A stretch of 64,000 nucleotides of DNA, from the sequence record NC_061418.1; one strand, written 5' to 3'. Both the position numbers and the translations under genes were made by a program. Positions within the stretch are counted from its first letter, which is position 1; every line of letters begins with the position of its first letter. The notes beneath the pieces were generated by a model. It was not told where the DNA came from. It did not search any database and saw only the letters and a program-made list of their open reading frames with translations. Shown here piece by piece: positions 146 through 18,445 of this stretch.

Positions 146-180
146 TTAATTGAATTCCTTTAGGCATCAAGAAAGAATAA

Positions 181-208
181 AAGAGGGAAAGGTTTTCCTT
201 TCCCTCTT
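181..208 (-). terminator. Intrinsic terminator
   Basis: Perfect 12-bp stem AAGAGGGAAAGG/CCTTTCCCTCTT with a 4-nt loop, followed by a T-rich tract on the minus strand, just after the 213..515 stop. Confidence 0.85.
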
Positions 209-212
209 TACG

Positions 213-515
213 TTAACTACCGAGTGTAGCGCCTAACAATAAAGCCAGCTCGCTCTCGGCTTGTTGCAAAATCTTTTCCCCATCCGTCGTCTCAGTCAGG
301 ATTTTAAAGGTCGTTTCTCCCGGAGAAAATTCATCTGCTTCAATACTGAAATAAACTTCCGCGGTATCTCCGACAAATTTCCCGCCGTAGTTTATGCTCA
401 GCGCAGTGTATGTTAAAGAAATTGTTCTTGGAATAGGGTTGCTGAACATCCCGAATTCTTCGACAGATTCTTTAACAAAGACCTCTTTCGTTATTGTAAA
501 ACTCATTGTGAGCAT
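213..515 (-). CDS. Small tailspike-associated protein (possible assembly chaperone)
   Basis: 100-aa ORF starting 3 nt after the tailspike stop. Its MSFTITK... start resembles small proteins found downstream of enterobacterial tailspikes. Function inferred from position. Confidence 0.55.
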   Translation of the reverse strand: MLTMSFTITKEVFVKESVEEFGMFSNPIPRTISLTYTALSINYGGKFVGDTAEVYFSIEADEFSPGETTFKILTETTDGEKILQQAESELALLLGATLGS

Positions 516-518
516 TCC

Positions 519-3167
519 TTAGAGTTGAGTGATTTCAATTTCAATCCCGTAGACATTCCCCGCAACAGCAGTATCGGTGTTTTGGGACGTCCCGCGATAT
601 AAGGCTGGAGGGATAACAATGTCAAAACACTGTCCATTGTTTGCTGAGAAATATCCCGCTTGCATACCCATGTAGGTTTGTGCATAAATCGTGTTTGTCG
701 TGAAAGACGAATAAGGAGATAATGTCGTCGTATAAACACTATTTGACAGCGTAGTCTCTGCTTTTAATTTTTCGTGTTCAATGACCGAAGCAACATAACT
801 TTGACCCTGGGTACTAACAGTATACGTTCTACTGTTGACGTGGTTAGAGCCATTTATTCTGATTTCAACCTTGAAGGTACTGTTCACGGGCAAATTCGTG
901 ACCCTGATAATTCCGTTATCAGTTGTAGCCGTTGCTGTTGAGGTTAGGCTGGTTCGATAACATATACGGGCTCCCTTGGTCTGGATTGGGGAACGCGCAC
1001 CGTATGGCGAATTGCCGTAGTTACAGCGCCCATATGTATACGTACTCCCATCAGATGTCGGGTACGCAAGATTATCCCAGGCCGGATAACTGTTAACATT
1101 ACCCGCTGTAGGAACAATAAGGACTCCGTCCGTATAGCCGAATTGGTTATCATCATTTTGCCATCTAACATCAACGCAACTGTTCAATGTTTCCGTAACG
1201 AAGGTTCTGACCAACGTACCGAAGTTAGATTGTTTAAGGCCATCAAAACGGGTTTGTACTTCTCCCTGCACAAAACCAGAATAAGCCCTGACGTAGAAAA
1301 TTATTTGGGGATCGTTCGCATAAGTTACCCCTATCCAGCCGCCAACATCGAAATGACTAGAGTACATGAAGGCGCGATCAACGTTATTACCGCCACCTAA
1401 AACAACGGCTTTCGATGCCTTCCCTACCCCAGAACCAAAGTTAAAATAATAACGTTTAACTGTTGTACCGTAGAAACTTTGCCACGCCGATTTCGAATAA
1501 AAGAGGATACCTTGTAAGCAGTGACGAATGTTTAAGTTCTCTGCATAGAAGTTCTCTGTCCAAGAAATCTCGTTACAAACCACGACGGCCGCCGAAAGAA
1601 CATAACCATGTGCATGGAAGTTCTTGAGTTCATTACCCCAACCATCTGCGAACCGGACAAAGTGAAGCGGATTGACCGTATCGGTGCAATAAGCGTAAAT
1701 TCCGGACAGTTTACCTGGGTTCCAACAAGGAGCCCCTGCTACGGTATTGAAGAATTTAATACCGTAGGTTTCCCCACCTGTCTTAAACTTATGATTTAAC
1801 TGGACAGAATCCATCCCCGTCCCATCACCGCCACGAATGTGCAATGGGCATTTGGTGACGTCAACTGCGACGCTGCCATAAAACGTGTACATGGTATTGG
1901 AAGGTGGGATAGTAATCAATGTGATATTTTTCAGGCGACTGAATGCTACGGCAGCGGTAAGTGCGTTCGTAATATCAGAGCCTGCAATCACTCCGTAATT
2001 AGCGAGGTTGATTTCGTTATTGATAACAATACGTTCCCAATAATACCCGGTACCGGAAGCAATTGAACCACCGTCATCAACTCCCGCGGCGAGATGACCG
2101 ATAAAATAACCTGCTCCAGAAACACTTCCGGAGTAATAACCTTTCAGGTAGATCTTTTCTCCCTCAAAGGCAGGTTTACGTGACCGTAATGCATCAAAAG
2201 ATTCTACGCCGTAAAATCCCTGTGCGACTTGATCAAGGTTGATACCATAACTAGTGTTAATTTTGGTCGCACCAGTGCTGAGCGCTAACGTTGCCAACAC
2301 TTCCGCCGGCGTACCCGATACACTGACGGTAATCTCCGCACGGGAGCCGCCCAGAATGACTTCGACAATGTCATTCGTACTGAGTGCCTTCGCCAGCGAA
2401 ATAGTAGTGCTGTTCAATACCTCAAAGTGTTTGTTCAAGATCTGGCGGCTACCGTTAATGTAGATAGCAGTGACGGTCTTAAACGACCACGGCGGCGTTA
2501 ATGTCGTTTCACCGCCTACTGCTGCACCGTCGTTATACAACCAGGAAACATTAACATAATCAGTGATACCCGGTTCTACAGGTGTAACAGGCGTACCCGG
2601 ATAAGGGCGCGTGTATAATACAACAGTTGCACCTGCTGTCAATGGTCCTGCTAGTTTGACTTTGTTGGTTTCATTATCAAAAGTATAGTTGGTCCCTTTA
2701 ATCTGATGACTTCCGTTAAGGAACATTTCACCTATATCGAAACAATCAAAAGGGATCCCAATCTCAGTTTCACCGCCGACAGCAGAACCGTTATTGTACA
2801 CGTAAGAGACGTAAGAAGTATACGCACCAAACTGACCACCGCCAATCAATTTCCCGGTACCGTAAATGACCGCTGTACCGTTTTTGTATAAAGCGGTAGC
2901 AGAAGCTCCATTGACGTTAACGAAGGCTGCTACGTAGTGCCGAGTGTCGTCTGTGAAGACGTAGAAAATCTCGTCTTTAACGGTATTGGAAATACCGTTT
3001 GCGATGGACGAGTAAGCGTTTTCAAATAAAAGATTAGCACGGATGTCATTAAGAGAAACGCGATAAGTTTCGTTCGTTTGCCCCGCTAATGCGACGGGTA
3101 AAACTGCAGATTCAGGGACTTTCCCTGTACTGACTAATTCAGAAATCTTTTTGCTGTAATTGCTCAT
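519..3167 (-). CDS. Tailspike A: shared anchor, two XD-like branching modules, neck module and beta-helix-type body
   Basis: Start moved to the ATG at 3167 (GAGG RBS). Contains the KISEL..FENAY anchor, two YNxGxAVGGET...NGSxQ modules, the GVESFDALR..DDGGSIASG..YWERI neck, and a putative beta-helical enzymatic region. Confidence 0.85.
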   Translation of the reverse strand: MSNYSKKISELVSTGKVPESAVLPVALAGQTNETYRVSLNDIRANLLFENAYSSIANGISNTVKDEIFYVFTDDTRHYVAAFVNVNGASATALYKNGTAVIYGTGKLIGGGQFGAYTSYVSYVYNNGSAVGGETEIGIPFDCFDIGEMFLNGSHQIKGTNYTFDNETNKVKLAGPLTAGATVVLYTRPYPGTPVTPVEPGITDYVNVSWLYNDGAAVGGETTLTPPWSFKTVTAIYINGSRQILNKHFEVLNSTTISLAKALSTNDIVEVILGGSRAEITVSVSGTPAEVLATLALSTGATKINTSYGINLDQVAQGFYGVESFDALRSRKPAFEGEKIYLKGYYSGSVSGAGYFIGHLAAGVDDGGSIASGTGYYWERIVINNEINLANYGVIAGSDITNALTAAVAFSRLKNITLITIPPSNTMYTFYGSVAVDVTKCPLHIRGGDGTGMDSVQLNHKFKTGGETYGIKFFNTVAGAPCWNPGKLSGIYAYCTDTVNPLHFVRFADGWGNELKNFHAHGYVLSAAVVVCNEISWTENFYAENLNIRHCLQGILFYSKSAWQSFYGTTVKRYYFNFGSGVGKASKAVVLGGGNNVDRAFMYSSHFDVGGWIGVTYANDPQIIFYVRAYSGFVQGEVQTRFDGLKQSNFGTLVRTFVTETLNSCVDVRWQNDDNQFGYTDGVLIVPTAGNVNSYPAWDNLAYPTSDGSTYTYGRCNYGNSPYGARSPIQTKGARICYRTSLTSTATATTDNGIIRVTNLPVNSTFKVEIRINGSNHVNSRTYTVSTQGQSYVASVIEHEKLKAETTLSNSVYTTTLSPYSSFTTNTIYAQTYMGMQAGYFSANNGQCFDIVIPPALYRGTSQNTDTAVAGNVYGIEIEITQL

Positions 3168-3220: not shown

Positions 3221-3221
3221 A

Positions 3222-3249
3222 TAGAGAGGAGCCAAAAGGCTCCTCTCTA
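3222..3249 (-). terminator. Intrinsic terminator
   Basis: Perfect 12-bp stem TAGAGAGGAGCC/GGCTCCTCTCTA after the stop of 3275..4999. Confidence 0.85.
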
Positions 3250-3274
3250 TAGTTTAAGATCTAGGATGTTATCA

Positions 3275-4999
3275 TTAATTTTGTTCGTACCACTTACCAT
3301 TAAAATAGTTAAACGTAACAATTTCATTTAAAGTAAGAGTGCGAGATGCGGATCCTTTCAAAACAATGGTGCTGTTATTGGCTAACGTAACGTTAGTATT
3401 CGCTGCATGGACCTTGATCTCTTGGGTATTGACGCCCCCAGTAAAGTTAGTTATTGTAGTAGCGGAACTCATGTTAAGGTACAAATAAGAAATACCATCA
3501 ACGGCTAAAGTGGTGCCCGATGTAAAAACCATGGATTTTTTAGACATGTTAAAAGGGCTGCCTAAATAATCATTGTTCTTATATTTTTGAGTACCTACTG
3601 CGGCTTGTACGTTTGGGGCGACCCAGTTATTCCATTGACTGTTAGATGAAGTTGTATCGTTAATCCCGTATCTTGGTGTAGTGCCATCTTGAGAATAAAC
3701 GCCAGCACCGACAAAAGTATTCAAAACACCGGAGACCGAGAAGCCATCATGGGTGTTAGCTGCGGCGGAACCGATACCAATTGCAGTAGGGTTACTGAAA
3801 GTGTTCGTTGAGCCAGTAACAACGAAACCATCACCCATACATCTATCTGCACGCGCCCCTGAAAAACGAGACCGCGTGCCATCGACGTAAATCCCGATTT
3901 CACCAAACTCACCGATAGTATCAGTGATGAAATGATTACTACCGCCGATCCTGAGAGCAACTGCCAATTTATTACCAGCTATAGTACTAAAACCACTTTG
4001 TCCATTAGCTTCGATTCTGAATAAGAAATGATCTGTCCCTAATATATCAACTGCCCCTTTCAATGTAGTGAAATTAGCTCTGTCATACATTGTGTTTAAA
4101 ACAATGATGTCCTGGATTACACAAGCTATAGAGCTAGAGAGGAGGCGTATACCTTGATTCTTTGTACTGTTAACGCCTACATGACTAATTACACAATTGC
4201 CTGAGGCTACTTCTATTCCACAGTCCAAATTAGCCGAACCAATAATAGTTATATTTCTGATGGCTGAGCTATAACCATTAACTACAATACCGCGACCAGA
4301 ATGTGTACACTTAATCGCAGAAGGATCATTCTGTGAATAATTACGCATTCCGTTGATACCAGAAAGATGGTGTCCAGAAGGAATTATAATTTCTTTGCCA
4401 GAGATCCATAACCCTTCGGAAATTTCACAATGGGTCGCGTCAGAAAGAACTTCATTGATCAAGTCACCAAAATCATCGGTGCTAACTCTTAACTTAATAT
4501 CATTGTACTTATTTTTTGTAACTGCGCGAGCTAGTTCAAATTTAGAACCATTACGCATGTCCGATAAAGTAGGTAAATAAAGTCCACCTACGTAATCCGC
4601 AAAACGTAAACTATCAACATCGGATGATAAGGTGGTCGGTAATGTTGCAATTGAACGCACTTGTCTACTTGTTGGTAATCTGACTTGTTCATTGTCATAA
4701 CCCAGAATAGGATTAGCCACACCACTATTATTTTGGTATTGCAACACCCACAATTTCGCCGCGCTTTCATAGACGAAAAATACGTCCCCTGACGCGGTTC
4801 CGTTCAGGCCCGCATCCACAGACAGGAAAGCGTTCTCGAAACCCAGCGTTTGACGAAGGTCGTTAATTTTGGTGGATTTAGTGAAAGGAACCCCTGCACT
4901 GGTTTTGGCGTTAATCGGGACGACGTCATTCTCTTTGATGACGCCTGCGTCACCGAGTTCAGAAATTTTGATTCCGATAGAATCTGAAGTCTTAGGCAT
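3275..4999 (-). CDS. Tailspike B / polysaccharide depolymerase (right-handed beta-helix)
   Basis: Shared KISEL/FENAF anchor; parallel beta-helix-like repeats (IRNITI, ISHVGV, IQDIIV, GDGFVVTG); short beta-rich C-terminal domain. Confidence 0.85.
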   Translation of the reverse strand: MPKTSDSIGIKISELGDAGVIKENDVVPINAKTSAGVPFTKSTKINDLRQTLGFENAFLSVDAGLNGTASGDVFFVYESAAKLWVLQYQNNSGVANPILGYDNEQVRLPTSRQVRSIATLPTTLSSDVDSLRFADYVGGLYLPTLSDMRNGSKFELARAVTKNKYNDIKLRVSTDDFGDLINEVLSDATHCEISEGLWISGKEIIIPSGHHLSGINGMRNYSQNDPSAIKCTHSGRGIVVNGYSSAIRNITIIGSANLDCGIEVASGNCVISHVGVNSTKNQGIRLLSSSIACVIQDIIVLNTMYDRANFTTLKGAVDILGTDHFLFRIEANGQSGFSTIAGNKLAVALRIGGSNHFITDTIGEFGEIGIYVDGTRSRFSGARADRCMGDGFVVTGSTNTFSNPTAIGIGSAAANTHDGFSVSGVLNTFVGAGVYSQDGTTPRYGINDTTSSNSQWNNWVAPNVQAAVGTQKYKNNDYLGSPFNMSKKSMVFTSGTTLAVDGISYLYLNMSSATTITNFTGGVNTQEIKVHAANTNVTLANNSTIVLKGSASRTLTLNEIVTFNYFNGKWYEQN

Positions 5000-5024
5000 T
5001 ATACTACCCTCAAGTGAAAGAATC

Positions 5025-5037
5025 TCATACGAAACAA
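5025..5037 (-). promoter_or_regulatory. Putative late promoter
   Basis: TTGTTTCGTATGA on the minus strand, 26 nt upstream of the 4999 start. Confidence 0.6.
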
Positions 5038-5069
5038 AAGAGAAGAGGGTCGTAGCCCTCTTCTCTTTT
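5036..5069 (-). terminator. Intrinsic terminator
   Basis: AAAAGAGAAGAGGG/CCCTCTTCTCTTTT inverted repeat directly after the 5075 stop. Confidence 0.85.
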
Positions 5070-5074
5070 TTAGA

Positions 5075-7288
5075 TTACCAACTAGAAAGAGCAGCTCTTA
5101 CCCAAGTATTAGTTGCAATACAAACGTAGTAATAACTACTATCAGCCGCCCATTGTCCTACAGTACCGGGAGCTGTTGCATTAGCAGGTACTGCGACTTT
5201 AACGCCAACTGGATTCCCTGCCACGGTAACGGCTCTTGAAAAATAACCATCCCGCCACTGAAGAGCACTTGTCCCAAAATCATAAAGGTTCGTCGCATTA
5301 GGGACTACTGTCCCCATGAAGTTGAACTGACTGGCGCCTCCGTTAGCAACAAAATTCATACCGGATAAATAACTGGTTAATGTCATCGGTCCGGTGTTAC
5401 CAAGTAAGATTCTACCCCCTAAAGTCGTGTTACCGTAAGGATAAAAATCCAGTCTCCTGTCTCCACTTGTAGTGTTATTATTTCCTATTTGGAGAATATT
5501 ACCACTGGAGATAGAGGCTGTTGTTTTAATAAGGTAACCGCTTATCGTCCCATCCTGAGCCACCGAAAGAATAGGTGTTGTCGGGTTGAAAGCACCATCT
5601 GTATTGGTGTAATAAATAGAAAGGGCGCTGTTATTATCGCTATCCACATCGATAATAAATTTTCTCGTCGCTACTTTGACGTCGTTAATGATCAGGCCGC
5701 TAGTAATTCTTCTCGTAAAGTTATTGATGGCGCAGTTTATCAGCTGATAAGCTCTTTTACCTTGTGTACTAGCGCTGACGTCAAAGATAGGGGCTACTGT
5801 AGAGTTACCGGAAACTTCAGAGAATGCGCTGGAGAAATAACAGCTATCGAAAACACGCCCGGTATTAGTACTTGTACCAAATCTAATCATTGGTACGTGG
5901 ACAGCGCTGTCATAACCAACTGCGGACTTCCTTAAAGTTTGGAAAGTACATCCAGTGAATTTAATAATCCCTTGGTTGATGAATCCTAATTCGTAAGTGC
6001 CCGCTGAATCTGTTCCGCCAGAACCATTATCGGTAAAAATTACTGTATCGAAATTAAACTGCGTACCGCCGCCCAAATTAAACCATTTTGCACCGTAGAA
6101 GTGAGTCTCAATATGACCGCCTTCAAATTTAATGTTGTGGTGCGTACTGGAGGTAGGAGTTGGGTCTACTTTAATAGCTACGTAGTTTTTAGTGTACGTC
6201 GTTTCAATGTGTGGCCTGATGAACACAATGTTGTTGGAGTTGTCCGTGGCCTGAGGTAAGAAATGAATCCCTGTCGCAGGATTGTTTGTATCATTATCAT
6301 CAACGGCAACAAACCCAGTCATGTAGATACAGTCGAAAACCGCATCGTAACACTGACCGAATGTTAAAGCTTTAGTGGGCGACATGAAGTTAAGGTTTGA
6401 AAATCTTCCACCAACAGCCATTGAGTTAGCGGTTACTTCACTTCCGAGTTTAATGTAATAAGCAAAAATGCCCGGTTCTTTAATAAACGTTAACCCGTCC
6501 ATTTCAAGGCGCCCGCCCGTGAAAGTAAAGAGAAAATCTTTATTCACGTTAGAAGAAATATAAGCACCTTTTCCTAGAATCCTAAACCTTGGTTTTCCAG
6601 TCTCATAGCTGATAGCGCTTAAGTCTTTAACTATTTTACTGTCGAGTCGATATTTACCTGGCGGGAAAAATAACCACCCCGAGGCATATCGTTGAGCGTT
6701 AGAGATATTGATTTCTTTTTGATAAATACATTTATCTATTGCTGCGCTAACTGCCGGAGACCAATCCCAAGTAGAGGGGTCATTAGGATTATCTTTTTTG
6801 GTGACTAGACTTGAAAACTCCCAAATATTGATAGGTAGGCTATTTAATGCTTTAGCCGCGCTCTCCGCGCTTAACTCGATCTCTTTACGTTGATAGCCAA
6901 CTTCATCAGCTCCATTATTAGACATAATTCCATCAACGTCACCACGTATTACTTTTATACCGTAACCGGTATAATTAATTTTAGCAGTACCGTCCGAGTT
7001 AAAAATCTGTTCTGCAACTCCGTTGCGGTTGACATATGCTTTAACTGTCGTTTTTTCTGCATCGACATAAACGTAGAAAATTTGATTAGGGACAGTACCC
7101 GCAAGACCCGCTACTGTCGTAGTGAATGCGTTTTCGAAATTTAGCAGGGAGCGTAAATCAGAAATCTCCATCGCTTTAGATTCGGTTATTCCCGCTTCAT
7201 TCTGAGCGATAAATACGACATCAGAATCATTTACCGGTTTCGATGGTCGATCCATTTCACTGAGTTTTACAAAGATCTCACTGGCCAT
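5075..7288 (-). CDS. Tailspike C / depolymerase
   Basis: Shared anchor (KLSEM..FENAF); pectate-lyase-3-like start (DWSPAVSAAI...LFFPPGKY); C-terminal PANATAPGTVGQWAADSSYYYVCIATNTWVRAAL motif typical of phage fibre trimer modules. Confidence 0.85.
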   Translation of the reverse strand: MASEIFVKLSEMDRPSKPVNDSDVVFIAQNEAGITESKAMEISDLRSLLNFENAFTTTVAGLAGTVPNQIFYVYVDAEKTTVKAYVNRNGVAEQIFNSDGTAKINYTGYGIKVIRGDVDGIMSNNGADEVGYQRKEIELSAESAAKALNSLPINIWEFSSLVTKKDNPNDPSTWDWSPAVSAAIDKCIYQKEINISNAQRYASGWLFFPPGKYRLDSKIVKDLSAISYETGKPRFRILGKGAYISSNVNKDFLFTFTGGRLEMDGLTFIKEPGIFAYYIKLGSEVTANSMAVGGRFSNLNFMSPTKALTFGQCYDAVFDCIYMTGFVAVDDNDTNNPATGIHFLPQATDNSNNIVFIRPHIETTYTKNYVAIKVDPTPTSSTHHNIKFEGGHIETHFYGAKWFNLGGGTQFNFDTVIFTDNGSGGTDSAGTYELGFINQGIIKFTGCTFQTLRKSAVGYDSAVHVPMIRFGTSTNTGRVFDSCYFSSAFSEVSGNSTVAPIFDVSASTQGKRAYQLINCAINNFTRRITSGLIINDVKVATRKFIIDVDSDNNSALSIYYTNTDGAFNPTTPILSVAQDGTISGYLIKTTASISSGNILQIGNNNTTSGDRRLDFYPYGNTTLGGRILLGNTGPMTLTSYLSGMNFVANGGASQFNFMGTVVPNATNLYDFGTSALQWRDGYFSRAVTVAGNPVGVKVAVPANATAPGTVGQWAADSSYYYVCIATNTWVRAALSSW

Positions 7289-7323
7289 AATTGTACCTTA
7301 CTTTGTCTCTAATAGTCAATTGT

Positions 7324-7331
7324 ACATACGA
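7324..7331 (-). promoter_or_regulatory. Putative late promoter core
   Basis: TCGTATGT on the minus strand, 36 nt upstream of the 7288 start, in the divergent intergenic region. Confidence 0.45.
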
Positions 7332-7406
7332 TTGACAGCTTGAAAGAATACGTTTCGGTTTATTATACATTAACTAGAGAAGGATGCGGAAAAGCTCCTC
7401 TCTTTT

Positions 7407-7420
7407 TTGTTTCGTATGAC
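7407..7420 (+). promoter_or_regulatory. Putative late promoter
   Basis: TTGTTTCGTATGAC, 28 nt upstream of the ATG at 7448. Confidence 0.6.
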
Positions 7421-7447
7421 CATTTTTATTTACGTTGGAGTTGTGAA

Positions 7448-9493
7448 ATGACCGATATCACTGCATTGAAAATCTCTGAACTATCGCCCAGTTCTAATCC
7501 GTCAGAGAATGCGTTTCTTCCGCTCTCAGAAGCGAACGGAATCGCTTCTGAAAAAGTCAGTATTGGTACCCTCAGAGAAACGTTAGGTTTTGAGAACGCG
7601 TACAGCACGATTGCTGGCGCGCTCAATGTAACTACGGAAGGGAATGTTTTCTTTGTTTACGAAGACAGTACGCGAGACTATGTTTTGGGGTATGTAAACC
7701 AAGGGAACGGAACCTATTCTGCATTAATGTCAGACAGTACGACACAAGTTCGCTACGCGACGAATGCGCATATTGTCAACTCTTTATTCATGTTACAAGG
7801 AGTAGAAAGTTTCGATGCGTTACGTACCCTCAAACCGTGGTACGAAGGACAACGTGTCACGTTGAAGAGTTACTACAAAGACGGGGTTACGGGTGCTGGT
7901 ATCTTCATTGCGCGTTTAGGAGTAAATGCAGATGACAACGGCACGATTGCCGCGGGGAACGGATTCTACTGGCAACGGATTATTTCTGATAAGTTGTCTT
8001 TTGAGGACTTTGGTGCAGTCGGGGGCGGCGTACTGGACGATACTAGTAATATTCAAAAAGCGGTCAACTACTGTGCCAAAAATGGCATTGCACTAACGTG
8101 TTTAGGGAAAGTATACGCGGTCAGTACCGTAAATTTCCCAACCGATTTAGTGATCGATATGCGTAATGCAGTACTTTTGTCGCTGCCCTCTGTTACGACG
8201 GGTTATACCTTAACAATCAGCGGCTATTTGTCACCTGCGGCTAATCCAGGGAAATTTGATAATATTCGCGTTCAGCGTACCTTAATTAATACTCATCAAC
8301 CCGACACTAACAGTGTCGTAGACGGCGTGTCATTTGGTGTCGATGCGCACAATATTTCCTTCTACAATCTTAAGGTCTCTGGGTTTAGGGACGGGGTTTG
8401 TTTTAACGGGAAGAGTGCTTACCTCATTCGTTTATACAGCCCAATCATCGGACAATGTTGGCGCCGAGGGATGGCCTTTTATGCGAATACTGATTCTAAT
8501 GAGAACGTGACTATTTACGGTGGCGTGATTGCAGATTGTTGTAATTTTACTTTCGACGGTACCGGGCTCTACTTATCAGGGAGTGCCTCGAGTATCGATG
8601 TCAGGTTCTTTGGAACCAGTTTTGATTATTGCGACATCTCAGTTGATATTTATCAGTCTAACGTCGAGCTCCACGGTTGTCACTTGGAAAACAATAACAA
8701 CAACCCTCATATTCGACTTTCGTACACCTCAACCAAAAACCAACCCTATCTGATCATGAAAGGGGGAACAATGGGCGGCGGACCGAACGCGAACTCGTGG
8801 AGCGGTATTCCGATAGAAAATAGTACGGGTCGCCCTTACCTCGTCTTCATTACTAACACTGGCGGTGCCCACGTAGATATTGATGGAACTGACACCAGTA
8901 AATACATGACAGGAGTCAGGAGAACTACCGAGATCGTAGGTGTAGAAGGGGATAACTACCAGTTGATCGGGACCTTAAGGGTGAGGAACAAAATGACCTC
9001 TGGAAACATGGATAACGCCAGCCGCCCCATGCGACCTTGTAGTGCTCTTAACGTGATTCTGATCAACCAGTATCAAACTGCCGCATGGACACCGAGTTAC
9101 ACTAACGCAGACCTAACTTATACGATTGATACTACGAATTACTCTAACCCTAATTCACCGCACTCACGAAAAATTACACAAGGAAGCGTACGTAACGTCT
9201 CTTACTGGCAGGACGTGACACTGCGCGGCGGAGATATCTTCCACGCGGAGGCCGAAATCAAAATTACTTCGTTGACGGCTGGTTACGTCGCACTTCGAGT
9301 GGATTTTTACGACTCTGCCGGGAACGTAATACAATCGTCAATCAAATCTGTATCTGCGGTGACGACCGATTGGAATAACGTGTGGGTCTGGTTACGTGCG
9401 CCAAACGGTACAGTCAAGGCAAAAGTTCAAGAGTACTTAAACGGCTTTGTTGGAACAGCATATTTCACCAATGAACACGTTTGGATTTCTTAA
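7448..9493 (+). CDS. Tailspike D / depolymerase with C-terminal carbohydrate-binding-like module
   Basis: Start moved to the ATG at 7448 (GGAG RBS). Anchor, neck, FEDFGAVGGGVLDDTSNIQKA (Pectate_lyase_3-like), and a C-terminal CBM-like beta-sandwich (WQDV...LRVDFYDSAGNVI...TDW...APNG). Confidence 0.88.
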   Translation: MTDITALKISELSPSSNPSENAFLPLSEANGIASEKVSIGTLRETLGFENAYSTIAGALNVTTEGNVFFVYEDSTRDYVLGYVNQGNGTYSALMSDSTTQVRYATNAHIVNSLFMLQGVESFDALRTLKPWYEGQRVTLKSYYKDGVTGAGIFIARLGVNADDNGTIAAGNGFYWQRIISDKLSFEDFGAVGGGVLDDTSNIQKAVNYCAKNGIALTCLGKVYAVSTVNFPTDLVIDMRNAVLLSLPSVTTGYTLTISGYLSPAANPGKFDNIRVQRTLINTHQPDTNSVVDGVSFGVDAHNISFYNLKVSGFRDGVCFNGKSAYLIRLYSPIIGQCWRRGMAFYANTDSNENVTIYGGVIADCCNFTFDGTGLYLSGSASSIDVRFFGTSFDYCDISVDIYQSNVELHGCHLENNNNNPHIRLSYTSTKNQPYLIMKGGTMGGGPNANSWSGIPIENSTGRPYLVFITNTGGAHVDIDGTDTSKYMTGVRRTTEIVGVEGDNYQLIGTLRVRNKMTSGNMDNASRPMRPCSALNVILINQYQTAAWTPSYTNADLTYTIDTTNYSNPNSPHSRKITQGSVRNVSYWQDVTLRGGDIFHAEAEIKITSLTAGYVALRVDFYDSAGNVIQSSIKSVSAVTTDWNNVWVWLRAPNGTVKAKVQEYLNGFVGTAYFTNEHVWIS

Positions 9494-9506
9494 GAAGGAA
9501 CTCACT

Positions 9507-9728
9507 ATGTTTCAAGTAGGCGACACCGTTCGCATCCTTTCTTGTCAAACTCGAGAAGACTTAGTTGGGAAAGAAACGACCATCAGTGCACTGGACGCTA
9601 AACTGAAAGATTTGGCTTGGGCAGATATCTACGGAATGGATCAATATATTTCGGTGGTCATCGATACCGATGCACGGTTTATTGCGGCTCAATTGGAACT
9701 CGTAGCCAGTGACATTGAAGGCTCTTAA
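9507..9728 (+). CDS. Small hypothetical protein (73 aa)
   Basis: ATG at 9507 with an AAGGA RBS; the MFQVGDTVRI start is a KOW/SH3-like pattern; followed by a terminator. Confidence 0.65.
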   Translation: MFQVGDTVRILSCQTREDLVGKETTISALDAKLKDLAWADIYGMDQYISVVIDTDARFIAAQLELVASDIEGS

Positions 9729-9734
9729 GTTATA

Positions 9735-9766
9735 GGCAATGAGGGGACCTAAGTCCCCTCATTGCC
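9735..9766 (+). terminator. Intrinsic terminator
   Basis: Perfect 14-bp stem GGCAATGAGGGGAC/GTCCCCTCATTGCC, then TTGTTT. Confidence 0.85.
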
Positions 9767-9804: not shown

Positions 9805-11763
9805 ATGTCTAATGAAACACAGAAAATTAGCGAGTTGCTCAATACGTCCATCATTTCAGAGAACACTATTCTTCCCGTAGTTGCTGCTGAAGGTGAGACC
9901 AATTCCATCGATATTATCACTTTACGCTCGGCGTTGTTATTTGATAAAGCGTTTGAGACTAACGCAGCGGGTAATGCAGCGACTAGTAAAAACGATTCTT
10001 ATTTTGTTTATACCGATGCCACCAAAACAGCCGTATTGGGCTGGATGAACCAAGGCGGGGATTCTTACTCGCCTCTCCTCGATATTAATGGTGCACAAAT
10101 CCGTTTTATTGCAGGTCAAACTATTCGAGGTCTGGATTATTTCACAAATGGAGTTAACTCGTTTGCGGATCTGAGAACACTGACTCCGTTGTATTCCGGG
10201 CAACGCATTAAATTAAAGGCTTGGACAGCGGGAGAAAAGACAGGCGGCGGTGAATTTATTGCTGTCTTCGGAACTGCGACTGACGATGCGGGCACTATCG
10301 CGGCCGGAAACGGCTTTTATTGGGAAAGAGTGATCAATGGTGGGCTAAATCCAGAGATGTTTGGTGCTATCGGAAACGGTGTAGTTGACGACAGTAATAG
10401 TTTATCTAAATTTCTACTGGCTTTAGCAAATAGAGCCAAATATTTAACCCCAATAACATTTGTTCCGGCCATAGGTTATCTCAACGGTATCTATAGAATA
10501 ACAAAGACTATTACTGTAGATGGCGGTAAAGTAAGATTAACTACCAACACTGTTGGTTGCATCTTTTGTGACCCTACAGGGACTTACGAAAGTACCGGAT
10601 GTATTAAAGTAACCAATAATTACCTTAACTCTGCTTTTGTTGGACAGTACGCAGCACTATTTGAAAATATTTCTTTCGTCAGTACAGGAAGAACACTCAC
10701 CGCAATTTACGCTGTGAGGGGAGATGCTGTGAGCGGTAATAACGGTGCGTGTCTTCATAATGTTTTTAAATGTTCGTTTAAAGGCTTCAGTAAAATTTTT
10801 ACACATGGACCTGGCGGTTGGGGTTGGAACTGGGCAGGTTGTCAATTTTCTGATAGTACCAATTTGATGGTAATTGAGGATCAAGACGACACTTATGAAA
10901 GGCATAGTTTTGATGGATGTATTTTCCAAAACGGAGGGGTTGCATTTACAATAAATAACCCCGATGGGAAAGTCTATTGGAAAAATGGTTCTATGGACTA
11001 CTGCACCGGCGCAGCTACAATTACCGCCGGTTTCATAGAACTTAATGGTCATTTCGAGTGGACAGCCAGAACCGTAGATTTCATTACACTTTTATCAAGT
11101 AATGCGGCTGCTTCTATCTCGGGTGCAATGTTTATTCGTAACAATACTTCTGGTTCTACCTATTACGTCATTAATCAATACCAAGATAAGCAAGTAAAAG
11201 TAGATAATTTGGTCGTTATATCTGACGGTAATTACATTGCCAATGGAGTACTCTCAAATAGAGAGTTGTTAAAGGGAACAATTTTTGCGCAGAACGACGC
11301 GTCTAAATCTGTGCTCTATCACTCCTCTGATGAAAATCTGATATCGGGAACTACGTCTTACCCTCAAGTAACTTTAACTAACACCACTCAGTTTTCTTAT
11401 TCGGTGGCTGATGGTTCTTTGACGATTAGTTGTTCTGCGGGCGGACAAAGTGGTTTTCTTTACTTAGATGTCCCGGTAAATAATAAAAAATTCTACGCTT
11501 ATAAAATGACGGCGAGTAATACGTCTAATGGTTCTGTGTTCCTAGAAAAAACCGTATTGAATGCAAATAAAGATACGATAAGAACCGATACCAGTTCAGG
11601 TACTACCAGCTGGGCAGCAGGCTCTAGTTCGGTGGCAGGAGGTACTGTGACTCTTTTATCTTTACCTGCGGCGGCGGCTTTTATACGAATTAGATTTAAT
11701 CTCTCAAGTATGACAACAGGAAGTACGTTTACTATCAGTTCATTGAAAACTTTCACTTTTTAA
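9805..11763 (+). CDS. Tailspike E / depolymerase
   Basis: Start moved to the ATG at 9805. Anchor (KISEL..FDKAF), neck, PEMFGAIGNGVVDDS (Pectate_lyase_3-like), beta-helix repeats and a C-terminal beta-sandwich. Confidence 0.88.
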   Translation: MSNETQKISELLNTSIISENTILPVVAAEGETNSIDIITLRSALLFDKAFETNAAGNAATSKNDSYFVYTDATKTAVLGWMNQGGDSYSPLLDINGAQIRFIAGQTIRGLDYFTNGVNSFADLRTLTPLYSGQRIKLKAWTAGEKTGGGEFIAVFGTATDDAGTIAAGNGFYWERVINGGLNPEMFGAIGNGVVDDSNSLSKFLLALANRAKYLTPITFVPAIGYLNGIYRITKTITVDGGKVRLTTNTVGCIFCDPTGTYESTGCIKVTNNYLNSAFVGQYAALFENISFVSTGRTLTAIYAVRGDAVSGNNGACLHNVFKCSFKGFSKIFTHGPGGWGWNWAGCQFSDSTNLMVIEDQDDTYERHSFDGCIFQNGGVAFTINNPDGKVYWKNGSMDYCTGAATITAGFIELNGHFEWTARTVDFITLLSSNAAASISGAMFIRNNTSGSTYYVINQYQDKQVKVDNLVVISDGNYIANGVLSNRELLKGTIFAQNDASKSVLYHSSDENLISGTTSYPQVTLTNTTQFSYSVADGSLTISCSAGGQSGFLYLDVPVNNKKFYAYKMTASNTSNGSVFLEKTVLNANKDTIRTDTSSGTTSWAAGSSSVAGGTVTLLSLPAAAAFIRIRFNLSSMTTGSTFTISSLKTFTF

Positions 11764-11806: not shown

Positions 11807-12373
11807 TTATTCGTCGGTTTGTTCAACCAAAATGAATTTGCTGTCTTCGGTGTTAATCGCTTTACCGGATTCGGTAAGCAGAGAACCACGAGGAATCTTA
11901 CTACCGCCACTACACGTGACGTCAAGGTTACCTGACCAAACGTGACTATTATAAGTCGTACCAGCTTTGGTCTGGATAGTCACAACCGCGGTTTCTCCGG
12001 ACGGAATGAACGGCAGGTAATCGTCCGCATTCGCAATATCTTCAACGTCAATATAGAGACTGTATTTTGCTTTGATCAACGGTAAAAGATCAGCGATTGT
12101 CGATGCTGTTTCCGGCAGGACTAAAGTAGGGCCAACCGACGCCATCAGTTTGTTCAGTTCGATACGGGTGTAAGTAAAGGTCTTACTCCCGGTTACCGGA
12201 GAACGACCTGTAACGAGCACGGAGACACGATCTTCTGTACCCGGTACCGTAGAACCAGTGATGTTACCAAAGCTCAGGTAGCTGGCGTTGAGCGGCGTAG
12301 TGAGGTTATTCTGCTGACTGATCAGATCAGCGAGAATCTCGTATTTGGGACGACCGAATAAATCGACGTACAT
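11807..12373 (-). CDS. Virion structural protein, putative tailspike adaptor
   Basis: 188 aa. The N-terminal ~150 aa resemble the small domain seen in phiKZ-like virion proteins (TFTYTRIEL motif); C-terminal LLTESGKAINTEDSKFILVE motif. Confidence 0.6.
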   Translation of the reverse strand: MYVDLFGRPKYEILADLISQQNNLTTPLNASYLSFGNITGSTVPGTEDRVSVLVTGRSPVTGSKTFTYTRIELNKLMASVGPTLVLPETASTIADLLPLIKAKYSLYIDVEDIANADDYLPFIPSGETAVVTIQTKAGTTYNSHVWSGNLDVTCSGGSKIPRGSLLTESGKAINTEDSKFILVEQTDE

Positions 12374-12422: not shown

Positions 12423-12809
12423 TCACCAAATCGGCTCGCCACGATCAATAAACTGAATTCTTTCTTTTCTACAGAGTTTTTCTAAGATATCTTTTAAGAG
12501 GTGACGATGACAGAAGCAGTCGTGTTTACAATAGCAGGCTAAACAAATTCGTTCCTGATTAATCAACCACAGCCACGGTTCCGGATTTTTGATAAACCGT
12601 TCACGGGTCAACCGGTAATAGATATCAACGTATTCCGCTTCACTGACAATGCCTTGCTTAAATGGCCAGAGTAATTCTGGAGTGGGTGCAAAGTCTTTTA
12701 TTCCGCTTTTTAAGGTGGTATCGACAAAGACAATATCCAGTCCTTCCCAAACTCGCCAATCTGGTATTCTGCCTGTCCATACTTCGAGTTGCTTGAATGA
12801 ACGAAACAT
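12423..12809 (-). CDS. DUF488-like protein
   Basis: Start moved to the ATG at 12809 (GGAGGAG RBS). FAPTPELL..FK..Y and LACYCKHDCFCHRHLL motifs match the DUF488 pattern. Confidence 0.7.
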   Translation of the reverse strand: MFRSFKQLEVWTGRIPDWRVWEGLDIVFVDTTLKSGIKDFAPTPELLWPFKQGIVSEAEYVDIYYRLTRERFIKNPEPWLWLINQERICLACYCKHDCFCHRHLLKDILEKLCRKERIQFIDRGEPIW

Positions 12810-16968: not shown

Positions 16969-17715
16969 TTACCAACGTGCAACCAGACCACTTTTCCCGG
17001 AAAGTAAGGTAGCGCGATCTAAGTTACGAATCGCATCAATCGTCCCTTTAAAACTGGACTCTACCGAAACCAGACTTTTATCTTCCGCCATACTACGAAT
17101 GATTGCCGGTTGAACCGGAACCACCAACGCCGATTCGCAAGACGGCGACATGTATTTGTTCGCAACAGAAAGACCCGGTTCGTTAACGAGATCCCAGGTG
17201 ATGATGTTATCAACGTACTTACGTACCTTCCCGCCCACGACTCTGTCGGTCGCCATGCTGCGAATACTGAAGGCCAGATTCTCGTCCGGGTTAGCCATGA
17301 TTTTATCAAAGTCATCACGACGTGCACCAGTAGAACAGACTTCGCCCATGATCGCGCAAATGCGCTGACCATTCGGTAACACGAAGTTCGGTACTACCCA
17401 AACTTTACGGATATGGATCGCCCAGTTCCGCTCATCAATCGTGTGGATGCGCTGAATGAACTTACGGTAGTCAGGGTAGTCATACTCTTTTGGATGACCC
17501 CACTCACCACGCAAATACCCTTCGTTAATCCGCTTCTGGAACAAGCCGTTTGCAGCGAGGATACGTTCTACACGCTGCTGGTCATAAACTGCCCCGATGC
17601 TGTTATCAAACTCTAACGCACCCAGGATAACTTCCAGGTAGTTATTATCGAGGCGTTTAATGTTACCGACCCGGTTCACTCCTTTCAGCGCCGTTACTTC
17701 AAATGACATTCCCAT
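16969..17715 (-). CDS. Prohead (head maturation) serine protease, phiKZ gp175 / SPN3US gp245-like
   Basis: GEWGHP (His), FSIRS (Ser) and TWDLVNEPG (Asp) motifs of the T4 gp21/HK97-type prohead protease fold. Start set at the ATG at 17715 (GGTGA RBS, 4 nt after the upstream stop). Confidence 0.9.
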   Translation of the reverse strand: MGMSFEVTALKGVNRVGNIKRLDNNYLEVILGALEFDNSIGAVYDQQRVERILAANGLFQKRINEGYLRGEWGHPKEYDYPDYRKFIQRIHTIDERNWAIHIRKVWVVPNFVLPNGQRICAIMGEVCSTGARRDDFDKIMANPDENLAFSIRSMATDRVVGGKVRKYVDNIITWDLVNEPGLSVANKYMSPSCESALVVPVQPAIIRSMAEDKSLVSVESSFKGTIDAIRNLDRATLLSGKSGLVARW

Positions 17716-17719
17716 GATT

Positions 17720-18445
17720 TCACCATCGTACAATATTAGAGAAACTCGACTCATACGAAAGCAGTCCCGCCTTGCGTTCCTTGGCAGCGTTGAATTCTGT
17801 CTTCGATAACGGGAACATCTCAACTTGGCTTTGGTCGAACGGCTCTTCTTTGTACCGTTCTAGCGCAGGGAGCACCATCTGATAATACCCGCGTTTCAAC
17901 GAAAAGAACGGCGAGAACTTTAAGGACGGACCCGTCACCTCAATGAGGATTCGGGTTTCAATACTTTTCTGGTAGTCATCTTTGATCAAACGAAGTTCGT
18001 CGATAAAACACTTCCCGACGACCCGCGCTGGGTAGGGTTGGTCTTCCTGATCGACATTCACTAACCAACGTTCTTCTGACCACTCTGCCATCGGGCAGAT
18101 AGATTTCCCTGGTCGCAAAGAACCCTCTACATCAATGGCGTAGATCGTATAGCCACCGAGCCATGTGTCATCACCCGCGCAGTGGGCTTTACTGTCGAGA
18201 AAGTCCCGTAACGCGACACCGTATCCTCGCAGACAATCCACCACAGTGATTCCGGTACAAACCCGTTTCACACTTTCATCTTCTCCCGCCATCGTCCGTT
18301 GAATTTCACGCGGAACGAAAACGTCGATCTTTGGATTAGGCGAGATATGATAAAGGACGCGGTGGTGCGTATCGACCTGTAAGGCGTTGATGGCGTGCTC
18401 TTGCTGTTTACGGACGAAAGCAGTTAACCGTTCAAATGGTGACAT
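17720..18445 (-). CDS. Hypothetical protein with an ADP-ribosyltransferase-fold-like N-terminal motif
   Basis: LYHIS...FVPR...ED...RVC..TV.DCL pattern resembles Arr-like ART-fold proteins. Pattern recognition only. Confidence 0.5.
   Translation of the reverse strand: MSPFERLTAFVRKQQEHAINALQVDTHHRVLYHISPNPKIDVFVPREIQRTMAGEDESVKRVCTGITVVDCLRGYGVALRDFLDSKAHCAGDDTWLGGYTIYAIDVEGSLRPGKSICPMAEWSEERWLVNVDQEDQPYPARVVGKCFIDELRLIKDDYQKSIETRILIEVTGPSLKFSPFFSLKRGYYQMVLPALERYKEEPFDQSQVEMFPLSKTEFNAAKERKAGLLSYESSFSNIVRW
17751..17761 (-). promoter_or_regulatory. Putative late promoter inside the upstream gene
   Basis: CTTTCGTATGA on the minus strand, 36 nt upstream of the protease start; same core as the tailspike promoters. 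Confidence 0.45.

Follow-up and report, generated by a model that had tools for sequence, protein, structure and literature searches.

Tailspike A and its domain order

The window analysed here, a 64,000-nucleotide stretch of DNA, comprises positions 62001-126000 of the record of Klebsiella phage KpLz-2_45 (NC_061418 / MN871446), and window coordinates are record coordinates minus 62000. Its first 9.5 kb were 100% identical to record positions 62001-71500. KpLz-2_45 is a jumbo phage of the genus Siatvirus with a genome of 296.7 kb; it is otherwise uncharacterised, the majority of its genes are annotated only as hypothetical protein, and a literature search found no paper on KpLz-2_45 itself. 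According to the annotation, a large tailspike cluster covers the left end of the window. We studied one gene of this cluster, tailspike A (gp096, YP_010297677; 519-3167, minus strand), which encodes 882 amino acids (aa) from the annotated ATG and was assigned from its open reading frame (ORF), translation, annotation and 77% identity to gp306 of phage phiKp24.

All parts of gp096 are encoded on the minus strand. The N-terminal anchor domain (residues 1-105; 2853-3167) was delimited by paralogue alignment and hidden Markov model (HMM) searches. It is followed by a tandem pair of XD modules, the T4 gp10-like beta-jellyroll branching domains: module 1 covers residues 118-190 (2598-2816) and module 2 residues 205-277 (2337-2555), and the two are joined by a proline-rich linker (residues 191-204; 2556-2597) that was evident from the translation and had a predicted local distance difference test (pLDDT) score below 50 to 55 in both structure models. 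The neck, a helical connector at residues 278-330 (2178-2336), contains helices at 287-294, 311-319 and 324-329 in the model of residues 1-330 and, as judged by homologue conservation, ends the conserved scaffold. The remainder, residues 331-882 (522-2177), forms the receptor-binding or depolymerase body, a swappable module recognised by its depolymerase matches and by its divergence among homologues.

Tailspike A contains two genuine XD modules

An earlier reading of this DNA without database searches (the original prediction) had placed two tandem branching modules between anchor and neck at 2346-2813, corresponding to residues 119-274, and had regarded them as XD2/XD3-type docking domains present only in tailspike A. 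The tandem pair was recovered with nearly the same borders. The same module occurs twice, at residues 118-190 and 205-277; the copies are 37% identical over 63 residues (pairwise E 5e-12), and an XD HMM built from 294 modules matched both of them, module 1 with E ~1e-27 and module 2 with E ~1e-25. In a PDB sequence search both modules matched tailspike gp82 of Shigella phage Moo19 (9d80, E 9e-31) and gp49 of phage B2 (9d83, E 3e-27), and module 2 could be aligned with the second module of each of these proteins. Module 1 additionally matched XD3 of CBA120 tailspike protein (TSP) 4 (7rej, residues 257-331; E 1.7e-11) and module 2 the type I fibre of Kp9 (7xy1, E 9e-9). CBA120 TSP2 (6w4q) was matched at E 2.4e-10 and by both modules of gp096, with weak per-domain E values of 6e-4 and 0.05.

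When the HMM was used to scan the complete genome, three XD modules were found. Inside the window they are confined to tailspike A, as had been claimed; genome-wide the claim fails, since gp091, encoded about 5 kb left of the window, carries the third. A second XD module in gp091 was considered and rejected because neck sequence directly follows the single module.

The fold of the modules was examined in an AlphaFold2 model of residues 104-290 computed from a deeper alignment, which reached a mean pLDDT of 80.8, with module cores at 85-97 (89-96 in module 1, 85-97 in module 2). A first model, of residues 1-330, had been poor (pLDDT 57, anchor below 50); the matches of its anchor were ignored and the XD-only model was used instead. 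The best Foldseek matches of this model were CBA120 TSP4-N (7rej_A; E 8e-8, probability 1.00) and chain 9d84_B of the B2 gp48/gp49 complex, which for one module gave a template modelling (TM) score of 0.94 and a root-mean-square deviation of 0.9 Å over 68 columns at 41% identity; T4 gp10 (5iv5) was a weak match (E 0.06-0.15). The structural match to XD domains on which the original prediction depended was therefore found. In the predicted model the XD module folds as a beta-jellyroll of about 70 residues and can be superposed on XD modules of known structure. Among the predicted viral structures of BFVD, 135 matches with E <= 0.001 were obtained among branched-spike phages, ranked in the order own clade, G7C-like Schitoviridae, Limestonevirus, Kuttervirus, Taipeivirus (Menlow, KpS110), Alcyoneusvirus (RaK2, K64-1) and a K1E-type adaptor. 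By sequence and by fold, the gp096 modules are true XD2/XD3-type branching domains.

The XD region is an old part of a conserved scaffold

The original prediction further held that the modules were near-identical to those of CBA120 and had been borrowed from Ackermannviridae. A tblastn search of the XD region over 50,697 phage records found it in 387 of them. Both modules were covered only in the phage's own clade and in the G7C-like Schitoviridae with genomes of about 70 kb (36-38% identity). In Kuttervirus and Limestonevirus records mainly one module was matched, with 40-46% identity over about 65 residues, and in KP32-like podophages one module with 40-50% identity. A library of 1.84 billion proteins gave 110 cluster representatives at E <= 1e-10. 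Among the matches listed there, the pair mostly sits at about residues 127-295 of proteins of about 900 aa, and one of these that was looked up is a spike of the G7C-like phage U1G; Kuttervirus-type proteins, e.g. of phage bering, appeared only at E ~1e-9.

The G7C-like Schitoviridae scored far better, and with both modules, than Kuttervirus proteins (E 1e-21 to 1e-31 versus 1e-6 to 1e-11). The Schitoviridae are thus the closest outside relatives of the tandem pair, and with Kuttervirus more distant than these, nothing points to a loan from Ackermannviridae. Near identity did not hold either, given the values for the single Kuttervirus module and the weak per-domain scores of TSP2. Because the XD region is conserved within the clade as much as the anchor (68-99% versus 65-98%), it is an old resident of the gp096 scaffold and not a recent acquisition.

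The same architecture of anchor, two XD modules and neck was present in 18 homologues. Over residues 1-285, i.e. anchor and XD region, each of the 18 close homologues showed 65-99% conservation; in the neck, identity was 69-96% in most of them and 27% and 49% in two. The body was only about 20% identical in 16 of the 18; its identity to phiKp24 gp306 was 82%. Judged by these alignments, gp096 is a mosaic in which a conserved scaffold carries an exchanged body. Residues 320-414 matched WceF (6tgf) and the Klebsiella phage depolymerases 7vz3, 7lzj and 7vyv. The start of the body (residues 320-420; window 1909-2207) also resembles the same region of gp099 and gp101, with 33-56% identity among the phiKp24 equivalents, which points to a putative ‘post-neck’ module shared by otherwise different spikes. 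At the nucleotide level, similarity to sister phages (90-94%) begins abruptly at about 2157 to 2479, in or just after XD module 2 and the neck. This abrupt start (window 2208-2450 in comparison with relatives) marks the recombination boundary at which the conserved scaffold gives way to the swapped body.

Anchor-type spikes probably form a tier that is separable from the XD modules

The anchor of about 105 aa (K-I-S-E-L ... L-R ... F-E-N-A ...) opens gp091, gp096, gp097, gp098, gp099 and gp101, and these paralogues are 27-37% identical. Paralogue alignment and HMM searches identified four of them as anchor-type tailspikes in the window without an XD module: tailspike B (gp097; 3275-4999, minus strand), tailspike C (gp098; 5075-7288, minus strand), gp099 (7448-9493, plus strand) and gp101 (9805-11763, plus strand). 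A genome-wide HMM search found the anchor elsewhere in the genome at the start of two more proteins, the full-size MGA_325 and the short, 207-aa MGA_312, so that gp096 and six others make up seven full-size anchor-type spikes. MGA_325 lies far from the spike cluster (record 275074-277293, plus strand; 2074-4293 of L011) and matched the anchor with E 2e-21. MGA_312 (record 266306-266929, minus strand; 42306-42929 of L010) consists of the anchor-like domain (E 1.6e-8) and about 100 further residues.

A profile of the six paralogues found no relative of the anchor among PDB sequences, and a Pfam scan of gp096, the anchor included, gave no hit. Two PHROG alignments starting from residues 47-49 had suggested that the anchor might be a hidden XD-like module; this was rejected, as hhalign of the anchor against the XD profile gave a probability of 0.15. 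Among the phage records the anchor was restricted to 23 jumbo phages (270-307 kb), each having 3-9 copies, which belong to the Klebsiella clade and the Serratia Moabite/2050HW group and include one Pectobacterium phage. It is thus a lineage-specific domain of these jumbo phages.

Serratia phage Moabite (record 170935-211225; L016) has eight consecutive anchor-type spikes, the first of which is annotated as ‘neck protein’, and its 40-kb spike cluster contained neither an XD module (best E 0.11) nor a docking peptide of the type described below. The XD tblastn search found only nine Serratia-named records, six of which are mis-named Klebsiella-clade phages; this leaves no more than three of the nine Serratia jumbo records as possible carriers of XD modules. 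These comparisons support an anchor tier that would be independent of the XD tier. The idea that a second tier is grafted onto the phage's own anchor system accordingly fares well as regards the anchor, which is lineage-specific and occurs without the XD tier in the Moabite cluster, but not as regards the borrowed origin of the graft.

Three spikes with a docking peptide match three XD modules

The spikes gp094, gp093 and gp090, all encoded near XD carriers, start with M-x-x-x-[F/L]-x-[Q/K]-P-x-G-[S/T], the motif [F/L]-x-[Q/K]-P-x-G-[S/T] lying within their first 13 residues. No other ORF in the 297-kb genome was found to have this docking motif at its N-terminus. The gene at the left edge of the window had been described as beginning with a QPxGxTS N-terminus like that of tailspikes that dock on XD domains, and it does: gp094 (756 aa), whose first 48 codons occupy 1-145 on the minus strand and whose remainder lies left of the window, starts with MQTNFIQPSGTTS, encoded at 107-145. 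In gp093 nothing beyond the peptide of about 17 residues precedes the neck. The same peptide type opens gp38 of KP32i194 (MLDKLNQPKGST), which is nearly the same as the gp090 and gp093 peptides, and gp006, a TSP1-like spike, of Kuttervirus bering (MISQFNQPRGSTS). Bering gp008 and U1G gp80 begin with a related version of it, FSQGGKGST.

The XD modules of the genome, a pair in gp096 and a single one in gp091, are thus as numerous as its peptide-type spikes, of which there are three. The genes of these spikes each lie a short distance downstream of the likely carrier: gp096 is followed by the small gp095 and then by gp094 and gp093, and gp091 by gp090. This order, together with the same three peptide subtypes (MQTNFIQP.., MLTDFN[KR]P.. 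and ML[N/D]RLVQP..), was found in phiKp24, KpSz_1, KpLz_1_41 and Centimanus, and hence in 5/5 clade members examined including KpLz-2_45. A 144-kb contig of a more distant lineage (L012) has a carrier with anchor and two XD modules, then a small ORF and then a peptide-type spike (MLDNFNQPRGST), the only one seen within the 22 kb examined. The first 16 residues of gp093 and phiKp24 gp303 are identical at an overall identity of 29%, so the docking peptide is apparently under separate constraint, the peptides being held while the bodies change.

Known systems with related modules

The closest described system is that of the sister phage phiKp24 (vB_KpM_FBKp24, Maaswegvirus). Its gp306 is the gp096 orthologue, with the above 77% identity extending over the full length, the same gene order and two XD modules; gp301, with one XD module, corresponds to gp091. 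HHpred has revealed T4 gp10-like folds in gp306 and gp301, and in the ‘hyperbranching’ model drawn for phiKp24 the primary fibre is gp306 (Ouyang et al. 2022, PMC9700779). The fibres are ranked there by N-terminal length only; anchor and peptide N-termini are not separated, and the 3:3 match of modules and peptides is not noted (PMC9700779).

Among the Schitoviridae, the G7C-like adaptor spikes Moo19 gp82 (9D80), B2 gp49 (9D83/9D84), G7C gp66 and U1G gp82 cover both modules with 36-42% identity (E 1e-21 to 1e-31). Their partner spikes have a related peptide, as in U1G gp80 (MNEMFSQGGKGST) and B2 gp48, which starts with MANQLFSQGG according to a cloning primer (PMC11654681), and B2 gp49 co-purifies as a complex with gp48 (PMC11654681). 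These phages differ from KpLz-2_45 in that they are podophages whose carriers have another N-terminal anchor and a single partner each.

TSP4 and TSP2 of CBA120 and other Kuttervirus phages (7REJ, 7RFO, 6W4Q) have the same XD2/XD3 fold and role, and module 1 is about 45% identical to XD3. In CBA120, XD3 of TSP4 binds TSP1 and XD2 domains mediate TSP2-TSP4 binding; XD2 and XD3 of T4 gp10 bind gp12 and gp11, and in both systems each XD trimer binds one trimeric partner (PMC8825819). Unlike these Kuttervirus proteins, which have the order AD-XD1-XD2-XD3, a D1/D2 head and Tail_spike_N (PF18668), gp096 has no AD, XD1 or D1/D2 head, and only one of its modules matches well. Their domain order with PF18668 was not seen in gp096, where the Pfam scan gave no hit, XD1 was not detected and the anchor had no PDB relative.

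The branching domain of gp37 of the Klebsiella podophage KP32 corresponds to one module, at 40-50% identity. In KP32 it has been established experimentally that the second spike joins the virion only when both the branching domain and the N-terminal peptide of receptor-binding protein 2 are present (PMC13352976). The KP32 system is otherwise unlike that of gp096, with a T7-type anchor, a single partner and a 40-kb genome. T4 gp10 is the founding member of the XD2/XD3 fold and has trimeric modules, but it is a baseplate protein rather than a spike and matched weakly here.

A probable two-tier tailspike apparatus

From the combined data we consider gp096 to be probably a branch-bearing tailspike whose XD modules likely hold gp094 and gp093, with gp091 carrying gp090, in a two-tier apparatus. 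The anchor would fix gp096 to the tail, as in the six other full-size anchor-type spikes. By analogy with the solved systems, each XD module would close into a trimer and offer a face to the N-terminus of another trimeric spike. The likely passengers of gp096 would be gp094 and gp093, which are encoded just downstream and both have the docking peptide, and gp091, with its single module, would carry gp090 likewise. Tier one would then consist of parallel anchor-type spikes, two of which bear tier two, the three peptide-type spikes. Because three XD modules and three peptide-type spikes stand against seven full-size anchor-type spikes, gp096 is better described as a local branch point for two spikes, making up a branch of three, than as the centre of a network, and the hub role originally proposed for it is not supported. 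What stands of that proposal as a whole is the XD identity, the matching docking peptide downstream and the lineage-specific anchor; near identity, borrowing, restriction to tailspike A and the hub are not supported.

Docking of the peptides is well supported, if indirectly, and several observations weigh against the two-tier arrangement. Both docking and the assignment of partners rest on homology, motif, counts and gene order. A CBA120 TSP1 head that lacks its first 13 residues still binds TSP4-N (PMC8825819), so that docking does not always depend on the peptide alone. For B2 gp49, two modules and a single known partner are described (PMC11654681), as they are for G7C gp66, and in L012 the number of modules in the carrier (two) is not the number of adjacent peptide spikes (one). 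Part of the conserved order is due to common descent, the five phages with this layout being closely related. No match was found for gp094 and gp090 among PDB sequences, and for this reason the docking peptide was compared only with fetched phage records. Finally, the published model of phiKp24 sets the gp306 orthologue as the single primary fibre (PMC9700779).

That model, transferred to KpLz-2_45, would have gp096/gp306 alone on the baseplate as a global hub, with all other spikes hanging from it directly or via gp091/gp301. It draws on the longest N-terminal structural part of gp096/gp306 and on the T4 gp10-like docking folds (PMC9700779), but only three XD modules genome-wide would have to serve about thirteen other spikes. 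Six other full-size spikes share the anchor of gp096 and should use the same kind of site, and the anchor is unrelated both to the XD modules and to the docking peptide. The eight anchor-type spikes of Moabite are mounted in the absence of any XD carrier in the cluster, which argues against gp096 as the sole fibre holding all others, and we regard such an arrangement as unlikely. Docking might also follow another rule, the XD modules receiving anchor-type spikes or one another while the QPxG peptides bind elsewhere. CBA120 TSP2 indeed binds TSP4 via its own XD2, and here gp091 and gp096 both have XD modules. This seems quite improbable, however, in view of KP32, where experiments support a peptide of this type as the partner of the branching domain, of gp093, which has just the short peptide before its neck, and of the three peptides that match three modules, each adjoining its carrier.

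A reading of the modules as spacers kept by inheritance, without a docking role today, would fit with the view of XD1-type modules as spacers (PMC8825819) and with carriers that hold more modules than known partners. Yet across the clade the two modules retain 68-99% conservation next to a body that is exchanged, near-invariant residues are kept across families, and every clade member examined has matching peptide-type spikes alongside the modules; a pure spacer function is thus very hard to credit. The two-tier arrangement can also be stated more generally, and in this form it is a possibility to which we give somewhat less than an even chance. In phiKp24-like phages, about seven of about 14 spikes would sit side by side via the lineage anchor, with no single primary fibre, and the XD tier would be a later addition offering three fixed slots in which every module has a docking-peptide subtype of its own, the peptides remaining conserved between genera as the enzyme bodies change. 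If true, this would correct the published architecture and would supply a simple sequence rule by which branched spike networks could be read off genomes.

The branching idea is already in print for phiKp24, and the finding, although real, is largely known; the gain is modest because the domain type, its role and the orthologous gene have been described. New are the split between anchor-type and peptide-type N-termini, the pattern of three modules to three peptides conserved across genera, and the comparison with Moabite, which is evidence that the anchor tier is independent of the XD tier and which questions the drawing of a ‘single primary fibre’ for phiKp24. The capsule types that a Klebsiella phage can recognise are determined by its branched spike set. 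Knowledge of spike placement would make the architecture of such phages readable from sequence.

Neighbouring genes and further N-terminal types

Between tailspike A and gp094 lies gp095, an annotated ORF of 97 aa (213-506, minus strand; phrog_7836), whose phiKp24 counterpart is gp305. A terminator-like hairpin with a 13-bp stem and a T-run (180-209, minus strand) closes the gp096-gp095 unit. Strong hairpins with stems of 13-14 bp and T-runs are present 3' of gp095 (this hairpin), gp097 (3221-3250) and gp098 (5036-5069), all on the minus strand. Because of these terminator-like structures the spike genes look like separate short transcription units, with gp096 and gp095 in one unit.

A third type of N-terminus, with 26-30% identity, is common to gp083, gp084 and gp102, the last annotated as a short ‘virion structural protein’. 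The loci with this type lie at 11807-12373 (minus strand) of the window and at 5439-9573 (minus strand) of L001. The L012 counterparts of this type carry PF25613 (DUF7941), and the type may represent another spike attachment system.

Small ORFs of 64-97 aa are scattered among the tailspike genes. They are unlike one another by position, yet nearly all end in G-S-stop: gp092 in EEEGS, gp095 in ATLGS, gp100 in DIEGS, gp302 and gp311 of phiKp24 in NSGS and IEGS, and the L012 ORFs in ESGS (twice); phiKp24 gp305 ends in GQS. Genome-wide, a GS terminus occurs in just 16 of 2046 stop-to-stop ORFs. Apart from gp095, such ORFs were located at 9507-9728 (plus strand) in the window and at 17602-17811 (minus strand) in L001, and also at 4858-5052, 9447-9740 and 21674-21895 of L003 and at 12484-12681 and 14676-14930 of L012. 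These GS-ending small proteins might be assembly helpers.

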